Shown here in pieces: positions 17,450-64,000 of a stretch of DNA of 64,000 nucleotides; position 1 is the stretch's first letter, and every line of letters begins with the position of its first letter. The stretch lies in the NCBI GenBank assembly GCA_025558095.1, contig JAIVFI010000046.1, positions 120,332 to 184,331 on the forward strand, given 5' to 3'. The notes beneath the pieces are model-generated. The model worked only from the letters and a program-made list of their open reading frames with translations. It searched no databases and was not told the DNA's origin. Source of the DNA: Hyaloraphidium curvatum SAG 235-1. Its lineage: Eukaryota; Fungi; Monoblepharomycota. Position numbers and translations under genes: made by a program.

Positions 17450-19106
17450 TCACCGGCTTTTCATCTTGTACTCGATGATCGCAGGCTCCGCCGGCCTCAT
17501 CACGCCCATGATCTGCTGCTCGTTCCCAGAGACGGGCTTCACCAGCTCGAACTTTTCGAACCTCTCGACCATGTTGACGATCTGCATCTTGATCACCTGT
17601 GTGGCCACCTTCTCCCCAATGCAGGCGTGGCGCCCCGCGCCAAAGACGAACAGTTTGCCCTGCCGCGCGAGCGACCTGTCGATCCCCCCTCCCGAAGCCA
17701 GATGCCTCTCCGGCCTGTACGCCCCGTCCGAGAAGAGGTGCTCGAGGCCGTGTAAATGGGAGGTCTTGAGAAGTAGGATCGAGCCCTTGGGCAGGTGCCG
17801 CCCGCCGAGCACCGCGTCGGACATGGCGCGGCGCACGCGGAGGCGTTGACCTTGACGCGCAGGTTCTCGCGGAGGCAGGCCTCGATGAAGACGAGCGAGT
17901 CGAGCAAGGAAGCGTTCATGGTCCCTTTGGCAGCGAGATCCGGATGCGCGAGGCGGGCTTCGGCGATCTCGGCCTTGGCTCGCGCCATGTGCTCCGGGTG
18001 GGACACGAGGTTGATCATCGTCCTTCACGCTGCCATCAGCACACAGCAAAGAGACTGCACTGTTTGTGGTTACTTACCAGCAAGCCGTCGCAAACGTATT
18101 GGAGTTGGCTGCAATGATGAGAGAGACAACCATGAAGGTCTGGTCGAGGCGGTCATCCGAAGCCACTCTCCAACAGCCGCAGGTGTGTCTCACCAGGTAC
18201 TCCGTATCCAGCACCGCTTTGTCGTCGTCCGCAACCAGCTCGTCCATGAGGTAGCGGAAAAAATCCCTCTCCCCGTCCTTCCCTGTTTGCGCTCGCGCCA
18301 TCCGCTTCTTCGCGACCTCGCTGACCATCGCAACCAGCCGCTCGTGTGCGGCCATGACGTTGCGCCCCTCCGCCGTCCAATGGAACAACCAGCGAGGGAG
18401 GAGGGGGATCCAGGGGCCACGCATGAGGCCTTCCTGCGGATCGACGATGCGGACGTCCTCGCTGAAGCGACGGAGGGCATCCGCGTCCAGGTCATCTTGT
18501 CCCATGATTGCCTGTATGGTATTTGTTTTCGTCAGCTCGTTGGCGACTGGTGCCCCCTCCGGCCAAACCACCTTTGCCAGAAGCTCCGTGGTTAGATGGT
18601 ACAAAGTCTCAAAGACGTCGAATTCCCCGCTCTCCGGCCACGAATCCATGTGCTTGTTGAGCTCCTCGAAGACCACGGCGATGAACCTGCCGTGCTTGTC
18701 CGGCGACACGGCGCGCGCCATCTGCACACATCCTCCTCGACTGCTCGTCCCCCGCCATCTCGCGATGGTTGAAGTTTCCGATGAGCAGCCGGATGCCCTC
18801 GAACATGCTGAGCTGCTTGCAGTTGATCAGCTCGGGTGTCGCCGCGTCGCCGACGGCGAAGTGCAGCCGCGGCAGGAGCGGGATCCGCGGCAGCGCGACG
18901 ATGCCCGCGGCGGCGATTTCCGGGTCCGCGCGCAGCTCGTCGAGCACGGCGTCGAAGTCGCCAGCGTGCTTTCGGAGGAGCCCGACGAGGCGGAACCGCC
19001 CGACGCGGGGGGCCGGCTTGGTCCCGGGCGGCGGCGGGGCCTCGCGTCCGAACACGAGCAGGGCGGCGATGCCGAGGACCAGGAGCGCCGTCGCATACTG
19101 GATCAT
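17450..19106 (-). CDS. Cytochrome P450 (CYP51/CYP7-like heme motif), apparent 1-nt deletion
   Basis: N-anchor MIQYATALLVLGIAALLVF; I-helix IIAANSNT; RENLR; YRPERH; FGAGRHACIGE. The frame breaks at ~17841 between ExxR and RRAMSD...LPKG, with no room for an intron. Confidence 0.82.
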
Positions 19107-45100: not shown

Positions 45101-46171
45101 CCTTCTTCCGAGCGAGCGAGAACTCACCGGGGGGTTGCTCGGGCCATCTGAACTCGCACCAAACTGGGCGGATGCCGCCGCCAACAGCGCCGCCAACGCT
45201 GCACCATGCATCCAGCCGACACCCGCAGTAGCCTGCTGCGAGTCCGTGGCGGCCGTGGGCAGGGGGAAGAGGGCGAGGAGAGCCAGCAACATTGCGAGGA
45301 GAGGCATGGGGGCTACGGCGCTGCGGCGGGGGAGTCGTGGCGTCGGCCCCCGAGGCCGGTCCACGGGCGGCGTGTGAGCCAGGGCTTTCACGACGCACAG
45401 GCGCAACCTTTGGGCCGCTGATGCCCGAGCCCGCGACAGCCATTCCACCACAGCCGCGGCAATACGCCACAGCACGGGCGCCCGGATCTTGGTTGTCGCG
45501 AGACGCGGCGCTCCGCCGGCTTTCACCCGTACCGTCGGCGTCAACGGGCTGCAACGCGGACGGCAGCGCGGGCGGGGGGTCATGCGCCGACGAGGCGAGC
45601 GGCGGCGGCGGCCCAGCAACGGTCCACTGGCACGGCGCCGCGCGAGGCGGACGAGCCCGGCGGCAGACAGAGGTGACAGGATACATGAGACTGCAAGGAA
45701 TGCAAGCGCCGCGGAGGCGAGCAACGGGGTGCAGACGATCGTGGGGAAAAGCGCGGCGGCGGCGAGGGGGATCACAACTCGCAGGGCGGCGATGAAGGCG
45801 AGCGCCGCGACCGTACGGGGCCAAAAGAAGAGTATGTCGATATGTGCGCCGAGGAGGGTGGTGTCCGTCGGCCGGAAAAGAGGCGAAGTGTCTGCGGAGG
45901 TAACGAACGGGGTCGCGGAGAAACACGGGTCCGGGACCCGCGCGATGCCAATCCCGGTCGCTTCGAAGCACGCCAGCGCGACGGAAGCACCGTAACCGGC
46001 GCAGTCGGGATGCGCGATACCAGGCCGCGCCCGGGCGGTCTGCCATGGTTGGATTGCCTGGATCAGCCGATGGTCGAAGACTACGGCCACGAGGAGGACG
46101 AAGAACGGCGAGACGGCCGCGACGAAGAGGCGGGCCAATCGCCGACGATCTCCAGGGGTCGCCGAGCCCAT
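42177..46171 (-). CDS. Large orphan multi-exon gene, apparently 3'-truncated; possibly mobile-element cargo
   Basis: Protein-like ORFs 44297-46171, 43656-44378, 42874-43650 and up to 42729 are linked by intron-like gaps. The last frame runs with no stop into the antisense of the mucin-like gene at ~42175. Confidence 0.5.
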
Positions 46172-46228
46172 GGCGGTTCGGTTGGGGCGGTGGTTGGTGG
46201 TGCCTGAAGATCAGGGTCTAGAGGTGGG

Positions 46229-46289
46229 GCCCCCGGGGGCGCGGTCCTTTTGAGCCGTCCACGGGGGTCGGTCCTTTTGAGCCGTCCAC
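46229..46289. repeat. 12-bp palindrome plus 2 x 21-bp direct repeat
   Basis: gcccccgggggc at 46229-46240; cggtccttttgagccgtccac at 46242-46262 and 46269-46289. Confidence 0.85.
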
Positions 46290-47999
46290 CTTTTCGCCAC
46301 CACAACCTCCACCTCTCAACCCACTGTCCGGCGCTCGATCGGGGACCATGCTCGCCGTGCTGCCACCATGGTTTTGCAGTCTACCGCTTCCCGACCCATT
46401 CCGCCTATCTACCGCCGGGCGCTCGGCGTCCCGCGCGCTGTCTCACATACCACGCCGCAGAGCCGCAGATCCTGGCGGCGGCCCGTATCCCGATGCAGGT
46501 TTCTGCCTGAGGGCCGCCGCCCCGGCCGGGTGCAGTCTCGGGCCACCGCAGCGTTCCGCGCCCGAGCCGACCGTGGTGATCTCCGAGGTCACCCCCCTCG
46601 CGGCCCAAATCACAGCTCGCAGCAGCGCATCCGCGTTCATATCCAATATCCCGACGCCGCTTCGTGTCCGAATTACTAGGACGGGTCCGATGGGCCGCTA
46701 CATACGGTGCTTTTCTGGGCGGTTTGGGCCCCCGCGACTCAGCATGTCGCGGCACGTCGCACGGCCCCATCCACGCCACGCACCCGAGCTCCCGGCTTAA
46801 TATCCCGAAGATCCACCACCGTCCAGCTCGCAGAGCACGCGGTTGGCCCGCAGCGGCCTCTTACCGGGGCCCCACCAACCCCGCCCCGGAGCGGCGATTT
46901 TTGTTTTTGATTACCTGGAGATTGAAAAATCTATTAAGGAAAATAATGTTTACTGACCCGAATCCGGAGCCCGTTTCCACGCCATTTTGCGCGATTCTGG
47001 CCCATTCCCGGCTCTCCTGGCGCGTCTCGAGACCTCCCGATTGCCTCCCTGGTGCTCGATGTGGAGTTCTGCGGCGCCGGGGTCCAGGACATGGTGCTCT
47101 TCCCGGACCTTGCGCGGAGTCGCCTCGCGGGCTGCAGTCCTCCTGGAAACACGGTTATCCGATGATTTTATCTTTTCTATGGAGCAGTTGGCCAGTGGAA
47201 CCTGAAGCAACGCGTTTCCGGACTCTTGGGGCACGGAAAACCATGCACATCTCCTCGCTGTGACGCGACGCGGGTGCCTTCGAGCACCGCGCGCCGAGAG
47301 CACTTTTGGGAACCTTTAGAAACCTCAGGCACGGGCGGAATGGGCCGCGTCGCTCGTGTGCTGCAGGATTTGGCCGGCTCGAAGTTTGTCGCGCTCGCCC
47401 TTCGAATGTGCTCATTTCTTGGCTCTTCGCTCCGTCGGATGTTCGTTGGAGGGAGCTCTTTCAGCGTGTCACGTGGATCTTATGGCGGGCTCGCTGCTCA
47501 CGGACTGTCGACGCTCGAGACGCGCTGCGCGCCGTTGGCGCGATCTACCTGTTGGAATCAAGCGCAACGGGTTCTTTGGTGAAGAGAGCAAATGTCGTTT
47601 TTGATTGCTCTTGTTTGGGGCTTCACGCGAGGGACGCTTGGTCCCCTGGTCACCTCAGATGTGGCCAACTTTTCGCCCACACTTCAGAACCCCTCCCGAG
47701 AAGCGGCTGGTTGCCGAAGATGGAGAACACAACATGCAGGATTGCCGATGCCATGTCGACGAGCAGCTCCGTGGCCGATGGTGACCTGTCTGCCTCCTCG
47801 TGTACGTTTCCGGCAAGACCATCTAGATTTCGCGGGCTTGGCATCAAAGACGGAATCAAATGAATGGAAATGACTGCTTGAAACACAGATAAGGATGCAG
47901 TAATGTCGAGGAAAGGATTACAAGAGGATATGGTCTATCTTGGCATCTGCCCCGTCCTCCGCGCCTCCCCACCCCTGGCACAGATCGTGAACGCCCCGT

Positions 48000-49053
48000 T
48001 CACGTTTCCAGTCTTGCCATTTGCTCCGCAACCGCCGCTTCGAAGCTACCGCCGTCCCTGGAGGAGAAGAACTTGATCGACTTGATCGTCGCCTTGACCA
48101 AGTTCCCGTTGGTTCTCAGCTTTCCTGGGTTCCGATGATTGACGTTCACGGAGTGCTTGGAAAGCAGATCCGCGTACTCCCGCGGCTCCCGTTTCTGGCC
48201 TTTCCGAAGAGCTGACAGGTGGAAGGCGGCAAGCAAGAGGAACTGCTCTCTCTCAGCCGGATGGTCCACGATATTCAACGGTGAAGCTTTCCCGTTCGAA
48301 CGGGCGCGTCCGACGAGGTCACTGGAGCTGAACGAAAGGCGTCGCGTGCCGTCAGGCATGGTCGCCTCGAACTGCGTCCCGAACGGGGAGTGGAGCGAGA
48401 CACCGATGCCGCGGCGCACTCGCTGAGCAACGGATGTCTTGGTCCGTTCGCGAACCTAAAATGAACAATGATTAGAGGTGCTACGCCTTCAAAAGACGGG
48501 GAAAGCTCGCCTGTTCGCGCTCAAACTGTGCCATGAGCGAGTTCATTGCGAGTGACAGCCACGAAGTAGCCGACGGCGCCGAGCCGCTCCAGAAGAAGGT
48601 CAGCTCGGGCTGGTTGACGCAAACGAAGGATTTTCGGGCCTGGGTGAGCTCCTGAATGTAGCTGTGGGTCGCAACCATGTCGCGAGACAACCGGTCCAGC
48701 CGGACGACGACCAGGCCGGCGTAGTCGTTCGAGGCGAGCAAGGAGACGAATGCAGCATGCAATTCCTTCCGTTCGAACGCCCCAGGCCCCTTGGGCAGTG
48801 CCCCGCTGGCCAGTTCTTCGTGCACCGCGACGACAATGTCCCCGCGCGCGGTTGCCCAGTCCCGGATGATCCCGATCTGATCCACGAGCGACAGATTGTC
48901 GCTCCCGTCGTCCAGCGACTTTCTGACGTAGGCAATCCAGCGCAGGCCTCGCCCAGATCCGAGCTGGGCCGCCGAGGCATAGGTTCCGAACTTTCCAACG
49001 AGCGAAACGAGGTGGGACACGTCCAGCGCGCTGGAAGCATGCTGGGGCTCCAT
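48000..49053 (-). CDS. Serine recombinase (resolvase catalytic domain + recombinase-domain-like extension), two exons
   Basis: IAYVRKS (YxRxS, Ser codon 48916-48918), SLVDQ, EELASG, ERKEL, VVVRLDRLSRD, MAQFEREQ|VRERT, G...SPFG. A 55-nt GC-AG intron at 48456-48510 joins ORFs 48481-49071 and 48000-48419 in frame, giving ~332 aa. Confidence 0.88.
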
Positions 49054-49622
49054 CTCCGCCCAGAAGGACAATCAGCGGCCCGCAATGAAGCAGGAGAGGG
49101 CCAAATGCAAGCTCGATCGGGATGAGGAGGCGGTGGCGGGTCGGTTTCGGTCCCTGAAGCGCGACAGACGTTCCGCCGAGAGACAGGGGTACCAGAGCGT
49201 CACACACACGAACTGAGCCCGCAACCGGCTTGAACATGAGCGCGAGCGACCATAGACGGGCCGGAAAGTGAGGAGGAAGGGGTTCAAAGACGTCAGACAA
49301 GGGTGTCGAAAAGGAGCTTCGCGGCACCTACATCGCGAGGCCCCCAAGCACTGTACAGCCGTTGGCTGCCCCAACGGAGGCACCGAGGATCTTTTTCCGG
49401 TCCAGATAGGAGCGAGAATGGGGGAGAACACGGCCGTTGGTCAGGATTCGTGCCACGAAACGGCGGAGCACGAACCGAGGGGGAAGGAATGTTCCGATGC
49501 GCCGCCGTCCAGAGGCAGTAGGAAGCAGACGACAAGGCCGCTGGACGTCCGGCTTGGTGCTCTCTCGTGGCAACCGGTCGGGTCTCCAGCCATCGCTATC
49601 GGAAACCGAGCGGAGTTCGGGG

Positions 49623-49654
49623 GAGTCTATCCAAGGGCTCCCTTGGATAGACTC
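49623..49654. other. Perfect 15-2-15 inverted repeat; candidate recombinase crossover (att/res-like) site
   Basis: GAGTCTATCCAAGGG-CT-CCCTTGGATAGACTC. The arms are exact reverse complements around a 2-nt centre. Confidence 0.6.
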
Positions 49655-50872
49655 TCTGAGACCCGCCGCCGAACCGCGATCTTGGAACTTCACTACACGC
49701 TATGCTAGTGCTCGGTTCTCCTCCCCGAGACCAACTAGGATAGAAGAGATGTTGTACTTCCCTCCCTGGGGAACTCAAGGCCAGTCATTGCTATTCAGGT
49801 CGCAGGACCGCCGAATGTGAGCGAGCGTCCCGAATTCACGTCCCGTCGAGCCTGGTGGGGAAGGGACGATATGGAGGAAACGCCTAAATCCCGACAAGAG
49901 CTAATCACATTTACATGCGTGGTTTGGGAGCGCAAGAAGAGCTCCGCAGGTCTTATTCACTCTGGGCCGGGCTTGACAGCTGCACACTTGAATGGACGTC
50001 CGGCATCTCGTCAATGCCGAGCAGCAAGATGCTCGAGCGTTCTAATGTACCATACATGGTTCAATAAAGTCATTCCGATGGATGATGCTTTCTTCCATCC
50101 TCTACTGGTCAGCGAGCGCTCCCAGAGCTCCATGCACGGCATGCTCAAGTTTGGGACCTCGCGGAGCCCCGCATGAGGACGTGAAGTTGTCCACAGCTAT
50201 GAGGCGTTAGAAATGCATATAAATACGCGATTTGTCGAAAAGCCGCGTCGATTGAATCGCCTGTGCGTGAACGCGGGCGGTCGGCGCGGACCCATTTTGG
50301 CCGATTTTGAGCCGTTCCGGAGCCATCCCGCTCACAAAAACGCAATGCAGCACTGCGAGGCGTGCCGATTCCTCAAGTAGTAGTATGAAAGCGTCGAATT
50401 CGGCCTGCATCTCAATTTAGGTCCGCAGCACCTCGGGGACCCAGACCCCCCCCCTCGTCAGTGGAAATTGACGCCGATGGCGCGCAACCACGCACCAAAC
50501 CCGGTCTGCTCCGCGCAATACGCTGACTCGATGTAAATAAGTGCGCAGAAGCTAGAACGGCTACCGGCCATCGATTTTCGCTTGGTGTAGGTGGTCCAGC
50601 AGGTCAAGACTAGCAGGTCCGACGCCCTCCCCCGATGTAGTGCCACTTTGCGCCGGTGTGTCGAGCTCCTCAATCCTGTCATCAAGCACATGCCTTTCTG
50701 TGCATCGCATTACCTCTCTACCATGGCCGCTGGAGCCGATTCAATCACTTCTATGGCCGCATCCGAGCACATACGATCGCCTTCCGGGTCCGTGTTCACC
50801 AGGACGGTCAATGGGGACTTCAGATGAGTTGCCCTGCTTGAATTCCACAATGATATACATGAAACCGATCTA

Positions 50873-53800
50873 CTACTTCGGGAATTCCGTCACAAGAACC
50901 ACCTTCAACGCCTCGTAGGCCGTCAGACGGGGGCCACGCAGCGTGGCATCCTTGGCATCAAGGAGGTCGAGAAACTCTCCCTCCAGGTAGGCCCAGTCGG
51001 GACCTCCATCTTCCGCGCGGCGCGTGCCGTAAGCGGGGATGGTAATCTTGCGCTGCGTGTCGTCGCTACGGCGAAATCCATCATCGCAAAGGCCCAGCCG
51101 ATGGACATGAGCAGCCCGGGATGTCTCCTCCTTGAGCTGCCCGCAGCGCCGACATAGCTGAGCTTCATCCTTTGGGGCATGCCCTCGCACCTTGGGCTTC
51201 GCGGGTTCCATGGCCGAAACAGCAACTTCCGGCAGGGTCAACGAAGGAGCGACCTGTCGGTCCAACTGACGTTAAACCACCAGCGCGACGGCAGAGAGAA
51301 GCCGGTATGCCGCTCACCGACACAGTCGAAGCACCTTGGACGAGCTTCTGGGCCACATGAGCGAAGGCAGCGAGGAGGGCCTCGGCCCAAGCCTCTTTCG
51401 AGATCTCGGGCGGCAAGTGCAGGGGCCTCGGCACGTGCTCGAGCAAAGCGGGCCCAGCTGCCAATGTGGAAGCATCGGGTAGAGCCAGAGACGATGTTGT
51501 CCCAGGCGCCGGCGGCATGGCCCGCTTCTTAGCCGCCGGAACCGACGTCGAGGCCGGCCGCGGTGCCGCCGGCGAATCTGCCCGTCCCTGAACCGAATCC
51601 TCACGTTTCCGCTTGCCGCTCAAGGCCATTGCACCGCTTGACGGCTGAAAGGCGACGGGCAAGGGCGCCGGCGTCCTGCAAAAGACGAGGGATGAGCCCA
51701 GAAGCCGAGATCCGAAAATGGCGTCCACCCACTCCAATACAGGCTCCACAGGCCGGTTTAGAGCCTGCACGGGCGCGGAAGAGAGAGAAGGAACGACGGG
51801 AACCTCCAGCGTGTCTTCCTCCATAGGAAACGAAAGAGGCTGGCTTGCAGCGGCAGTAGAGGCAGCCTTCGGCGACATTTGGCTCGAAGGCCCGGTTGGA
51901 GACGAAATGACCGGCGAGAACAAGCCTGAGGTGGCTACAACGGCGGACCCGAGCTAATGAACGCAGACATGTTGAGTAGACCATGAATCCACTCCATCGC
52001 AATCATTTACCTGGGCCACAGTGCGCTGAAACTCGGCCTTGATGCCGTAGTTCGGCGCGGCTCTACCACGAGCTTTCGGAGACGGCGACGGCTTGTGCGA
52101 AGGACGACTTTTCGGAGTGAATCCGCGAGGCGAGGCGGGCCGCGCCTTCGGGACAGCCGGATCCTTTTCCCTTTCGGCGACGTGGGCCTGCTGGTCCCGG
52201 ATCGCCTTCCCGGCTTGCCGTGCTTCCGCCGAGGTGACGGCACGAATCTCAAAACACTCGTGATCCTCCAGAAGCGGGTTGCATTGTGCAGGGTGACCAT
52301 TCTGGCGAGCCAAGCGGTTCCGAGCTTCCAGCACCTGGCAAAGAGCCGGATTCCTGCCCAACTGCTGGGCGCAAAAGTCGCCGAATTTGATGCGCAACAC
52401 GGTCAGCATGTAATCGAGATCGAAATGGTCAATCTCCTGCAGGATGGTGTCCTCGAGTTTCGCGTGGCGGCCGAGCCAGTCCTGCAGAAGCCGAAAATAG
52501 CCCTCGAGACGATTGCTTCCCCTAGCAACCATCACTGAGCCGTCTGCCGCGATGTAGAACAAAATCTCTGGATCGTCCAAACACCCCTTTTCCAGGTGCA
52601 CTCGAGCGTTTGCCCAGTTCTTCTCAAACACCTCGACCTTCTTTGGAGGAAGACCGCCGTGGTACCGAAGAGCTTCGTTCTTAGCGGCGTCGAAGGCCTT
52701 GATGGCTTCCTCGCGTGGCAGCATCGGCTGCGGCGTCTTCTCCCGCTGGGGAGCTCAACTCCCGGGAACTGAATGGAACTCCAAACGATGCCGATGATCT
52801 TGTCCTTGACAAAATCCGTGACCCCGACGTCCTCGCAAATCCGTTGCACCCAGTGGAAATGGTCGAGACGTACGACCTCGAGATCGCCAAACACAGCCTT
52901 CACGAGTGGGGCTAAAGAGCCCGGCGAGCCACAGCACCGGTCCACTTGGAGCACGATGACCGAGTCCCCGGCTCCTCAAAGGCGCCGACAGATTTCCCCG
53001 AATCAAGCTTCTTTCCGTCGATTCCACGGCCCGCAGCTTTCTGAGCCCGCAAAGAGTTACGAAGAACCTCTAGGCCGTGCTTGGCTGCGTCGTCACCCTT
53101 GTTCCGGGCCATGTACTGCGAACGTCGTCAGAAGCTCCGCTGCATGGGCAGCGCGGAGCGGCTCACCGCGCCAAGAGGAGTACCAGTCACGGTGATGTAC
53201 TTGATCAGCTGAGGTTTGCTGCTCATGGACTCGGCCGCCACGCGGCCGCCGTTCACCTTTGCAGCCGCATCCTTCTCGGCATCCGCGGCAGCACCGCCGT
53301 CAGCATGCTTGCTGGAGTTGAGGGCCTTGTGGCCCCCATTCTCCTCGTCGTGCACGTAAGCTTGGTGCAGTGCGGTCTTTTCCAGTCCGTCCTGCGCAAT
53401 GTTCCGGCCTGCGCGGCGGAGATGAGCCAATTAGCGAAACCAAATCCGTTCCGCCAGAACCCACAGTCAGCCTGGTACTGATATGAGTGGAAAAGATGGT
53501 CGCCGTATCGGTTCCAAACTGCGTCGTGTAGACGAGTCACAAAAGCAGCGTCGATCACATCCCCGGCCATTCTGACGCCAAGTCAACACACAGGCGAAGG
53601 CTCAGCCCGAATCGCGGCCCAACTCACGAGAATTCGTCCTCCATTGACTCCTGGATCGACTGCGGCTTCTTCCTCGCTCTGCCGGAAGAGGCCGGCGAAC
53701 GTCGGTACGGTCGTGCCGTCGGAGGGCCCCGCCTGAGAAGGTGCCGAGTCGTTTTCAGCCGAGTCTGATCTCACGACAAAGGAATCTATGCTCGTTTGCT

Positions 53801-54888
53801 TGGATCCCGAAGAGTCTATGGGAACGGAGTCACAGCGTGTCCTCACGATGCCACACAAAAGGTTACCTGAAGAGAAGAATGCGCTGGTCGTCTCCGCATC
53901 CGGCATGGGGCCATGCTTCCCGTGGTGTTGAAGGTGCAGCGCGACGACGTGATGTTCGGCCTCCAGGTCGGCTGGAACCGAGATGTCACGAAAGGGCAAG
54001 AACCAGTTCAGAAAGAGCCGTACCGTTCAGGATCTTGGCCGCCATGCCCGGCCCGCACTCGTTCACCAGGTTGTAGACCTTCGAGAGGAACGACATGTGC
54101 ACGTACGAGTGGCCGACCCGTTCGTAAGGGAACACTGCCGACGAATGATTAGCAAGGTCGACAAGATCGATCAGGGAGCGGTTCCTACCGACGTAGCGCA
54201 GGTCCGCGGGAATTCTGTCGAGCAGGTTGTGGGCACCAATCTGGAAGGTGCACTTCCCCGCCTTGGCTTCCCCAAAGTTCTCGCAAACGTATCGCCGGGG
54301 GCAAAGAAGTTCCAACTCTCCATGGGGCCCACGCATGAGGAAGAGATCTTGAACCCAAGCACTGGGCTTCAGCTTCAATCCGCACGTCGGACAAATGAGC
54401 CGCGCCAAGTCCGGGTAGCCCTCCCAGGGAGAAAGGATGAAGGTCGGCCGAAGCGTCACGAGAGAATCCATTTCCGGGGTTCCCGGCCCGTTGAGGACCT
54501 TGAAAATCGGATCCCCTCCATCCCGGAGGACGAAGCGCTCCGGATGACGTCGTAGATCGAAGGGAAAAGGCTGGAGACCATGGGTGAACGGGGTAACCTT
54601 CTTCCCCGGCAACCTCCTCTTTTGGGCGGCCGAGAACTCGAGCTGGAAGGCCGTTCCGTGCTGAGGACGCCCTTCTGGAGGTGCCTCGCCCGCCGAAGCT
54701 TGTGGCTGCTGTCCGGCGGGCTCCCCTCCGCTTTCCGGCTGCCCGGCCGGCGGCGCTGCGGTCTTTGGCGGGCGACCGCGCTTCTTCGTCTGCTTTGGTG
54801 CGTCCGAAGCCTTCATCGCGGGGACCTTAGCCTTCTTCACGCCGCCAGAGACCTTCTTCGCGCCGCCCGTGTTCCGGTTCCGACCCAT
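50873..54888 (-). CDS. Zisupton/KDZ-superfamily DDE transposase, multi-exon
   Basis: AT-hook KRGRPPK; DUF6729-like CPTC...W...RRYVC...C...LLDRIP; spliced IAQDGLEK; VDRCC...VRLDHFHWVQR; HLEKGCLDDP...ARGSNRLEGYF; C-terminal CRRCGQLK...H...C finger. Confidence 0.75.
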
Positions 54889-55206
54889 GCCTCCGCTGGC
54901 CCGAGAAGTCGCGTCGAGACGCGACGGTTCGGATCAGTTGGCCTCGTCTTCGGCGCCAGAGTCCTTCCTAGAGCTCAGACTGCCCTGCTTGCAGTCATTC
55001 CCGTCCAGAATGTCCCCAGGGGATGCTTCAACAGAGGCCTCGTCTCCTCCCGGGGAGAGGAAGCTATAAACCGTCGCGACACGCGGGAAGGCGAGGCTCC
55101 TCGCGACAGTAGCGTTGATTCGAGGGCAGAGAAGGCTACGCCGACGCGCGTCTGGGACGGGGCCGGCGCGCAGGTGGCCTCTCAGGGGGTTTGGCCCGGT
55201 GGGGGA

Positions 55207-55272
55207 GGGTTGGGGAGGGTTGAAAGAGGGTTGAAGAGGGTTGAAGGAGGGTTGAACCGGGTTGAAGGGTTT
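55207..55272 (+). repeat. Array of GGGTTG(AA) motifs at ~10.4-bp period
   Basis: The motif starts at 55207, 55217, 55228, 55238, 55249 and 55259, with a degenerate copy at 55267. Confidence 0.85.
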
Positions 55273-55608
55273 GGTCTAGTAAACAGATCTATATCACGCC
55301 GCCCACGCCTATCAAAGCCTGTCATCTCCTCGGGCATCCCCCGCCCAAACTACCGGCGCCTGCGGCACGGGTTAGTTTCCTCCCGCCTTTTTGCGACAGG
55401 CGCCACCACTTCCCGCGGCGGCCGTTGTTGCCGGAAGGGCACACGGCCGGGAGGTCGTGACGCCTATCGCGACGCCACTCTGTCCTCCCCACGCTTCAAC
55501 CTCTCACACATATCTGTGCTGCTGCCCAATCAGGTCCCGTGCTGCCGTCGGCCATCCCTACCATCACCGGCTGCTTCGTAACCCGATCCGGGTGAGGACG
55601 CCGCCGCG

Positions 55609-63950: not shown

Positions 63951-64000
63951 GCTCGAGACGACCGTCAGGGACTGGCCGCGGCGGGCGATCGCGCGCGATC

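Follow-up and report, generated by a model that had tools for sequence, protein, structure and literature searches.

The genome of the fungus Hyaloraphidium curvatum (Monoblepharidomycetes) contains a real, recently active composite transposon in which two genes move together. The copy described here occupies positions 46893-55300 of the analyzed window, a 64-kb stretch of contig JAIVFI010000046.1 (assembly GCA_025558095.1) whose base 64000 is the contig end. This segment of 8,408 bp probably belongs to a recently active family of 8.4-kb DNA transposons in H. curvatum whose members encode a DDE transposase and a resolving serine recombinase. Both genes are read from the minus strand, which sets the orientation of the element. 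The window is fungal nuclear DNA with a G+C content of 65% and genes interrupted by short introns, and its part 40873-64000 was 100% identical to locus L005 of the same contig. A first-pass annotation of the window had placed a composite element in a block of lower G+C, and the difference was found again, with 59.7% in the element compared to 69.6% in the left flank and 63.2% in the right flank.

The large protein of the element belongs to a cluster of five members on five contigs, all named as hypothetical proteins by NCBI and all from H. curvatum GCA_025558095.1, and all five loci were fetched and compared. They were L002 (contig 9), L004 (contig 4), L005 (contig 46, the window), L006 (contig 37) and L007 (contig 34). 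L004 aligned to the window only over 55300-50044 and 49766-46886 (99% identity) and had unrelated flanks. The window match of L006 and L007 began at 55300/55305, and that of L002 stopped at 46893. The assembly holds the element in at least four unrelated contexts, namely three full copies (contigs 4, 9 and 34) and one telomere-truncated copy (contig 37). Every copy opens with GGCGTGATAT and closes with ...AAAA(A/G)TCGCC. Reading the junctions base by base, we found the 5' terminus (55279-55300, minus strand) once and at the same place in L002, L004, L006 and L007 with 0-1 mismatch, the flanks diverging immediately outside, and the junctions of the copies placed the 3' terminus, which ends ...AAAATCGCC on the minus strand, at 46893-46915. 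The limits given in the first-pass annotation, 46215-55279, were about 680 bp too far out on the left and 21 nt short on the right.

Two independent copies were flanked by perfect 7-bp target-site duplications of different sequence, CGTGGGC in the contig-9 copy and GGTCCGG in the contig-4 copy. Duplications that differ in sequence in this way are the mark of staggered-cut insertion. Members of the family end at fixed positions and duplicate 7 bp of the target on insertion. No duplication was present in the contig-34 copy, which has GTTGGGG on one side and GCTCCGG on the other. In the window copy the heptamer just outside the 3' end (46886-46892, GCTCCGG on the minus strand) was likewise unmatched at the other end, where 55301-55307 reads CGTGGGC.

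Both genes and a palindrome between them were found as a set. In each locus with enough DNA, the recombinase gene followed the large gene on the same strand at a distance of 1.6-1.8 kb, and the set kept its order and spacing on contigs 4, 9 and 34 and in the window. All four annotated resolvase genes of the genome (protein variants P0009 and P0010) were inside the element beside the large gene; the sole copy without one was L006, which ends inside the large gene at the contig end. No separate boundaries, duplications or solo copies of the recombinase module were found in the loci read. The first-pass annotation had proposed a single composite unit and a check of whether the two genes co-occur, naming genes that are never linked, or a recombinase with boundaries of its own, as the opposite outcome. 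The loci read gave neither, and the shared ends, order and spacing in unrelated flanks, together with the two perfect duplications, support both genes and the palindrome as one mobile unit.

Two subfamilies of copies were distinguished, one on contigs 4 and 34 and one on contigs 9 and 37. In the first, the two copies were separated by only 3 substitutions in 8.1 kb. Between the subfamilies there were 198 substitutions, 1.8% in coding versus 3.2% in non-coding sequence. The large gene showed 31 synonymous and 39 non-synonymous codon differences between subfamilies, and the recombinase gene 5 and 2, respectively. Judged from these small counts, non-synonymous changes in both genes were fewer than under neutrality.

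The window copy was a mosaic of two of these copies. From 53913 through the V-ATPase flank to about 62 kb it was identical to contig 9, and from 53799 through the left flank to 43986 it had zero substitutions compared to contig 34. It also carried private 1-bp indels at 53675, 52962, 52743, 50718-50719, 50340 and 49573, and the deletions at 52962 and 52743 frameshift the large gene. Contigs 34 and 46 both terminate soon after the element. The window copy is most likely a redundant or chimeric contig end assembled across the 8.4-kb repeat, and it is possible that the mosaic is a real recombinant. The same mosaic with its identical flanks, and the same two contig ends, are what would speak for segmental duplications or assembly redundancy in place of a transposon. 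That explanation was considered extremely improbable, since contigs 4, 9, 34 and 37 each have one or two unrelated flanks, all copies share the same two breakpoint bases, and two of the copies have perfect duplications.

The recombinase gene (48000-49053, minus strand, 1,054 nt, 332 aa) consists of two exons in the NCBI models of all copies, which agree with each other and with the coordinates of the serine recombinase predicted in the first-pass annotation. Exon 1 (48511-49053, minus strand) encodes a leader of 38 aa, then the catalytic domain and the first part of the E helix, with the codon of the nucleophile Ser46 at 48916-48918. It is followed by a GC-AG intron of 55 nt (48456-48510) with the in-frame junction FEREQ/VRERTK, and by exon 2 (48000-48455, stop included), which encodes the rest of the E helix and a C-terminal domain of about 130 aa. 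The open reading frame (ORF) 48481-49071 (minus strand) matched PF00239 with an E value of 2.9e-13, and the full protein P0010 matched it with 2.5e-17 and 63.8 bits (cut-off 23.3), residues 40-197 covering model positions 2-143 of 145. R44, S46, D120, R121 and R124, the equivalents of R8, S10, D67, R68 and R71, were invariant in four sequences down to 58% identity, including homologues of 58-60% from two other sources, among which the motifs YVRKS and LDRLSR were also invariant. Judged by these residues and the domain match, the protein is a true serine recombinase of an undescribed subgroup.

Its relation to described subgroups was distant. Plasmid recombinases of bacteria matched residues 30-210 at no more than 32% identity. 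In the structural database the marginal best match was the catalytic domain of an IS607-family TnpA (PDB 6dgc, profile E 0.011), and in an alignment to the TnpA of ISC1926 the motif YVRKS fell on YARVS. The NCBIfam models XisF (E 1.7e-6) and CcrA scored far under their cut-offs, with alignments that run past the catalytic core and reach the E helix. A PFG motif, seen by eye, opens the C-terminal domain, as it does the recombinase domain of the proteins of the Tn4451 TnpX, Tn5397 TndX, XisF and CcrA type. An AlphaFold model of the recombinase built from 5 sequences was unusable (pLDDT 40).

These weak matches to IS607-family TnpA, XisF and CcrA, and a large protein without a recognisable transposase domain, could mean that transposition is carried out by the serine recombinase itself, as in IS607 and Tn4451/Tn5397, and that the large protein is accessory or unrelated. 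In two surveys, IS607-type TnpA was the only serine recombinase of eukaryotic elements (PMC3627910, PMC3673617). The IS607-like elements of eukaryotes and giant viruses, which come with Fanzor2/TnpB, resemble the present element in encoding a serine recombinase. However, their recombinase is the transposase and carries an N-terminal MerR-type domain, and those elements have neither inverted repeats nor duplications. No such domain was present here, where the 38-aa leader matched no family, and the IS607 model gave 16.6 bits against a cut-off of 110. The identification as an IS607 TnpA was rejected, since the domain order was wrong, a MerR-type leader was missing and the element makes duplications. 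No TnpB or Fanzor (OrfB/TnpB) was found in the element by Pfam or NCBIfam. The Tn4451/Tn5397-type proteins also differ, in that the present protein has only 332 aa and no match to PF07508 or a zinc ribbon, and those elements integrate without target duplications. Variable 7-bp duplications in two copies argue for a staggered cut and not for exchange at a fixed 2-bp core; in addition, the palindrome is internal and the element ends do not resemble it. A transposase role of the recombinase was accordingly held to be very unlikely.

The palindrome at 49623-49654, already reported as an inverted repeat in the first-pass annotation, was confirmed by an inverted-repeat search as a perfect one with 15-nt arms and a 2-nt non-palindromic centre, which reads AG on the minus strand. 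On that strand the stop codon of the putative transposase gene comes 1.2 kb before the palindrome, and the recombinase ATG follows it after 570 bp. No other perfect inverted repeat in the window is as long, and none is of its kind; in 40 first-order Markov simulations of 64 kb the maximum was 12, which puts the palindrome far beyond chance. All full copies keep it, the outermost base of one arm being different in L002. Two inverted half-sites around an asymmetric central dinucleotide are the general form of serine-recombinase crossover sites. From its form and position, the palindrome is a candidate site bound or used by the recombinase. A search of Rfam gave no match other than the hairpin itself. 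At L004:14958-15018 the right arm of the palindrome was present three times in tandem.

One of the two other sources of recombinase homologues, outside H. curvatum, was L001:1503-2247, on a 6-kb Logan contig (SRR26194948) with 52% G+C. Identity was 46-49% including the C-terminal domain, and residues 254-304 were conserved at 46%. Its neighbours are a multicopper-oxidase fragment on one side and an UNC-93 gene on the other. The homologue has no counterpart to about 55 residues of the H. curvatum recombinase, which may reflect an intron or a deletion.

The occurrence of this homologue without a large gene within -1.5/+4 kb fits another explanation, in which the palindrome and the recombinase gene are a module, once independent or captured, that is nested in a cut-and-paste transposon as a passenger without a role in transposition. 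The homologue distributions of the two proteins are quite different, and cargo capture by fungal DNA transposons is known (PMC12730594), both of which agree with a passenger. However, the loci read gave no separate boundaries and no solo module, and all four annotated resolvase genes are inside the element. The catalytic residues of the recombinase are intact, the few differences between subfamilies are mostly synonymous, and every full copy keeps the palindrome. On balance we regard a passenger as rather unlikely, though it is the main rival and deserves serious consideration, and a resolvase function of the recombinase as plausible.

The putative transposase gene (50873-54888, minus strand) was defined by the NCBI models P0003, P0005 and P0006 and by exon mapping; the window model is P0006, and its coordinates are those of the large co-oriented gene in the first-pass annotation. 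In intact copies the gene is split into 10 exons by 9 introns of 51-64 nt, most of which start with GT, and it encodes 1171-1172 aa. These introns, like that of the recombinase gene, are short ones of the host type. When a 266-aa ORF piece (51957-52754) was compared by phmmer to the whole library of 1.84 billion proteins, the 1171-aa protein of the same species was matched at 96%, and the sole other match was one 97-aa fragment (P0004) with 38-42% identity. A word-indexed search with P0003 matched only P0003 itself.

The large protein contains a signature of VDRCC, 24 residues, LDHFH, about 115 residues and SNRLEG. The first part (52853-52942, minus strand) holds a candidate second catalytic Asp and a DxFH block, as seen in the translation and in an alignment to ISL3 transposases, and SNRLEG (52500-52519, minus strand) is a candidate catalytic Glu motif whose N and E are invariant in P0004, the only distant homologue. 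The order and spacing of the D ... DxFH block and the SNxxEG helix motif are like those of ISL3/IS256/Mutator-type DDE transposases, and seven plasmid ISL3 transposases have the invariant residues D224, D245-x-F247-H248 and N387...E391 in the same order as the large protein. The combined pattern D...DxFH...SNxxEG, which was chosen post hoc, occurred in 174 of 100000 shuffles of the large protein. Unlike this protein of 1172 aa, the ISL3/IS256/Mutator-type enzymes have about 430 aa; no model of their families matched it, and the similarity was not significant (P 0.11). A plasmid match to an ISL3 transposase by tblastn (E=0.9) was discarded, since it was located in the ISL3 N-terminal region and not in the catalytic motifs. 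Because of the signature and the 7-bp duplications, the best reading of the large protein is a DDE-type transposase of unassigned family, and it may mark an undescribed transposase lineage.

The first-pass annotation had labelled this protein a Zisupton/KDZ transposase, a label that found no Pfam or NCBIfam support at E<=10 and does not fit the duplication length and the termini. A divergent KDZ (Kyakuja/Dileera/Zisupton) member with a serine recombinase as cargo would be consistent with a large fungal element and with the Cys-rich N-terminal region of the large protein (CPTC ... CPRRYVC ... C). KDZ elements are themselves fungal DNA transposons of large size that carry cargo genes and have long transposase genes with many exons and Cys-rich N-termini, and the 7-bp duplication is the length reported for Kyakuja (PMC12730594). 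However, Kyakuja has CA..TG termini and no inverted repeats, while the termini here are GGCG..CGCC, and the duplications of Zisupton and Dileera are 8 bp (PMC12730594). The cargo reported in KDZ is TET/JBP, in contrast to the serine recombinase found here. No match to PF18758 or to a CxC profile was obtained for P0003, P0005 or their segments at E<=10, and library-wide phmmer with residues 607-852 returned the one 97-aa fragment and zero fungal KDZ proteins. Membership in KDZ was considered unlikely.

For the preferred explanation, a transposon with a DDE transposase and a resolving serine recombinase, the following mechanism is proposed. The large protein would be an RNase-H-like DDE transposase of unassigned lineage with an ISL3/MULE-type signature that cuts and joins the ends with a 7-bp stagger, as the duplications indirectly indicate. 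The serine recombinase would be an accessory enzyme encoded by the element, which would bind the palindrome as a dimer and exchange strands at its central dinucleotide. In this way it could resolve joined copies, either cointegrate-like or translocation-like products of copy-and-paste transposition or dimers, and restore the parental molecules. The proposed resolution would parallel that by TnpR at res in Tn3.

The likeness to the Tn3 family (TnpA, TnpR and res) lies in a large transposase gene, a serine recombinase gene and a recombination-type inverted-repeat site shortly upstream of the recombinase gene, the whole set being inside one unit that makes short target duplications. In contrast to Tn3, the present element is a eukaryotic nuclear one with spliceosomal introns in both genes. 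Its duplications are 7 bp and not 5 bp, and its clean terminal repeat is 4 bp compared to about 38 bp. The large protein has no similarity to the Tn3 TnpA (DDE_Tnp_Tn3) in Pfam, NCBIfam or plasmid tblastn, and a tblastn search of 72,556 plasmids with residues 485-760 gave no match to a Tn3 transposase at E<=10. Tn3 has a res of three subsites, whereas a single palindrome is present here, and the recombinase here has no recognisable C-terminal helix-turn-helix.

Several results weigh against this explanation. With the large protein, whole or in segments, no Pfam or NCBIfam match was obtained at E<=10 and no transposase was matched in a PDB sequence search; an AlphaFold model of residues 100-780 was unusable (pLDDT 34), and no first catalytic Asp could be fixed. 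In an hhalign comparison with the seven ISL3 transposases, the best local alignment lay on precisely the D...DxFH block, but its P value was 0.11. The terminal inverted repeat was clean for GGCG only, with 13 of the 22 first positions matching by eye. On the side of the recombinase, its C-terminal domain (residues 182-332) matched nothing in Pfam or NCBIfam and had no HTH_7-type helix-turn-helix, no further half-sites above chance and no Tn3-type three-subsite res were found near the palindrome, and the homologue in L001 had neither a relative of the large protein within -1.5/+4 kb nor an upstream palindrome. Direct evidence of replicative transposition was not found; the only inter-copy mosaic seen was the window copy, and when its switch was tested as a sign of site-specific exchange, it was located at 53799-53913 and not at the palindrome.

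A further claim goes beyond this explanation and can be put forward only tentatively. The element could found a new superfamily of eukaryotic DNA transposons that uses a copy-and-paste (cointegrate-type) route with its own serine resolvase and crossover site, as a counterpart of Tn3. It would combine a transposase that has no detectable relatives with a recombinase from a lineage not known from other eukaryotic elements. In the searchable literature, no report was found of a eukaryotic element that combines a staggered-cut transposase with a serine recombinase, nor anything on transposons of H. curvatum, although such an absence does not prove novelty. Scans of viral contigs and of metagenomes found no relatives.

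The 5' end of the element carries a subterminal tandem array (55205-55267, identified by TRF) of five to six units of 10-11 nt with the core TTCAACCC on the minus strand. It lies 33-95 nt inside the end at 55300, its core motif is found at element positions 35-77, and no inverted counterpart was found at the other end. The array is a candidate binding site of the putative transposase. The first-pass annotation had described repeat arrays bracketing the element. Both arrays exist; the right one is this array and lies inside the element, and the left one, a tandem 27-mer of 2 copies (46234-46289), is about 600 bp outside. The left array stands just upstream of the ATG at 46171 that opens a minus-strand ORF of 624 aa, left of the element and without gene annotation in the assembly, for which an exact database look-up returned no record. 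To the right of the element, a V-ATPase subunit-a gene is spread across several ORFs at about 56.0-58.9 kb.

A segment of 277 bp (49767-50043) was missing from the contig-4 copy in the alignment of copies and is hence dispensable. It covers most of a 154-aa ORF on the opposite strand that is annotated only in L002. The deletion has no microhomology at its junction and lies 113 bp from the palindrome. At the end of contig JAIVFI010000037.1 (L006:12091-12283) the copy is cut within the large gene at the equivalent of window position 52798 and some 190 nt of (TTAGG)n-type repeats follow; the arrangement resembles a broken transposon copy healed by a telomere.

Some sequences recurred outside the ends of the element. 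In the window and in L007, GCTCCGG directly follows the 3' end, and in L002 (17998-18013) this heptamer stands 2 nt past the duplication. Three different 3' junctions have it or a near copy either at the junction or no more than 9 nt away, and the duplication of L004 is GGTCCGG (17748-17754). This recurrence may reflect either a preference for certain targets or chance, the DNA being rich in G+C. A 159-nt stretch just outside the 3' end (window 46727-46882) was 73% identical, in the same orientation, to L007:9144-9302, which is 287-445 nt beyond the 5' end of the contig-34 copy. Both members of the pair carry GGGATAT(T/G) motifs recalling the 5' terminus of the element, and they may be remains of an older relative. 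Two 150-aa ORFs in the flanks of L006 and L007 were tested as longer inverted ends and were unrelated.

If the proposed explanation is true, the combination of a staggered-cut transposase, a catalytically intact and intron-bearing serine recombinase and a crossover-type site would be a new architecture in the classification of eukaryotic transposons. Replicative DNA transposition aided by a resolvase would become conceivable on linear nuclear chromosomes, and the recombinase and its site would be a eukaryote-adapted pair that might serve as a tool for genome engineering. Since copies differ by only 3 substitutions, the element family may still be active in H. curvatum and is thus open to experiment.

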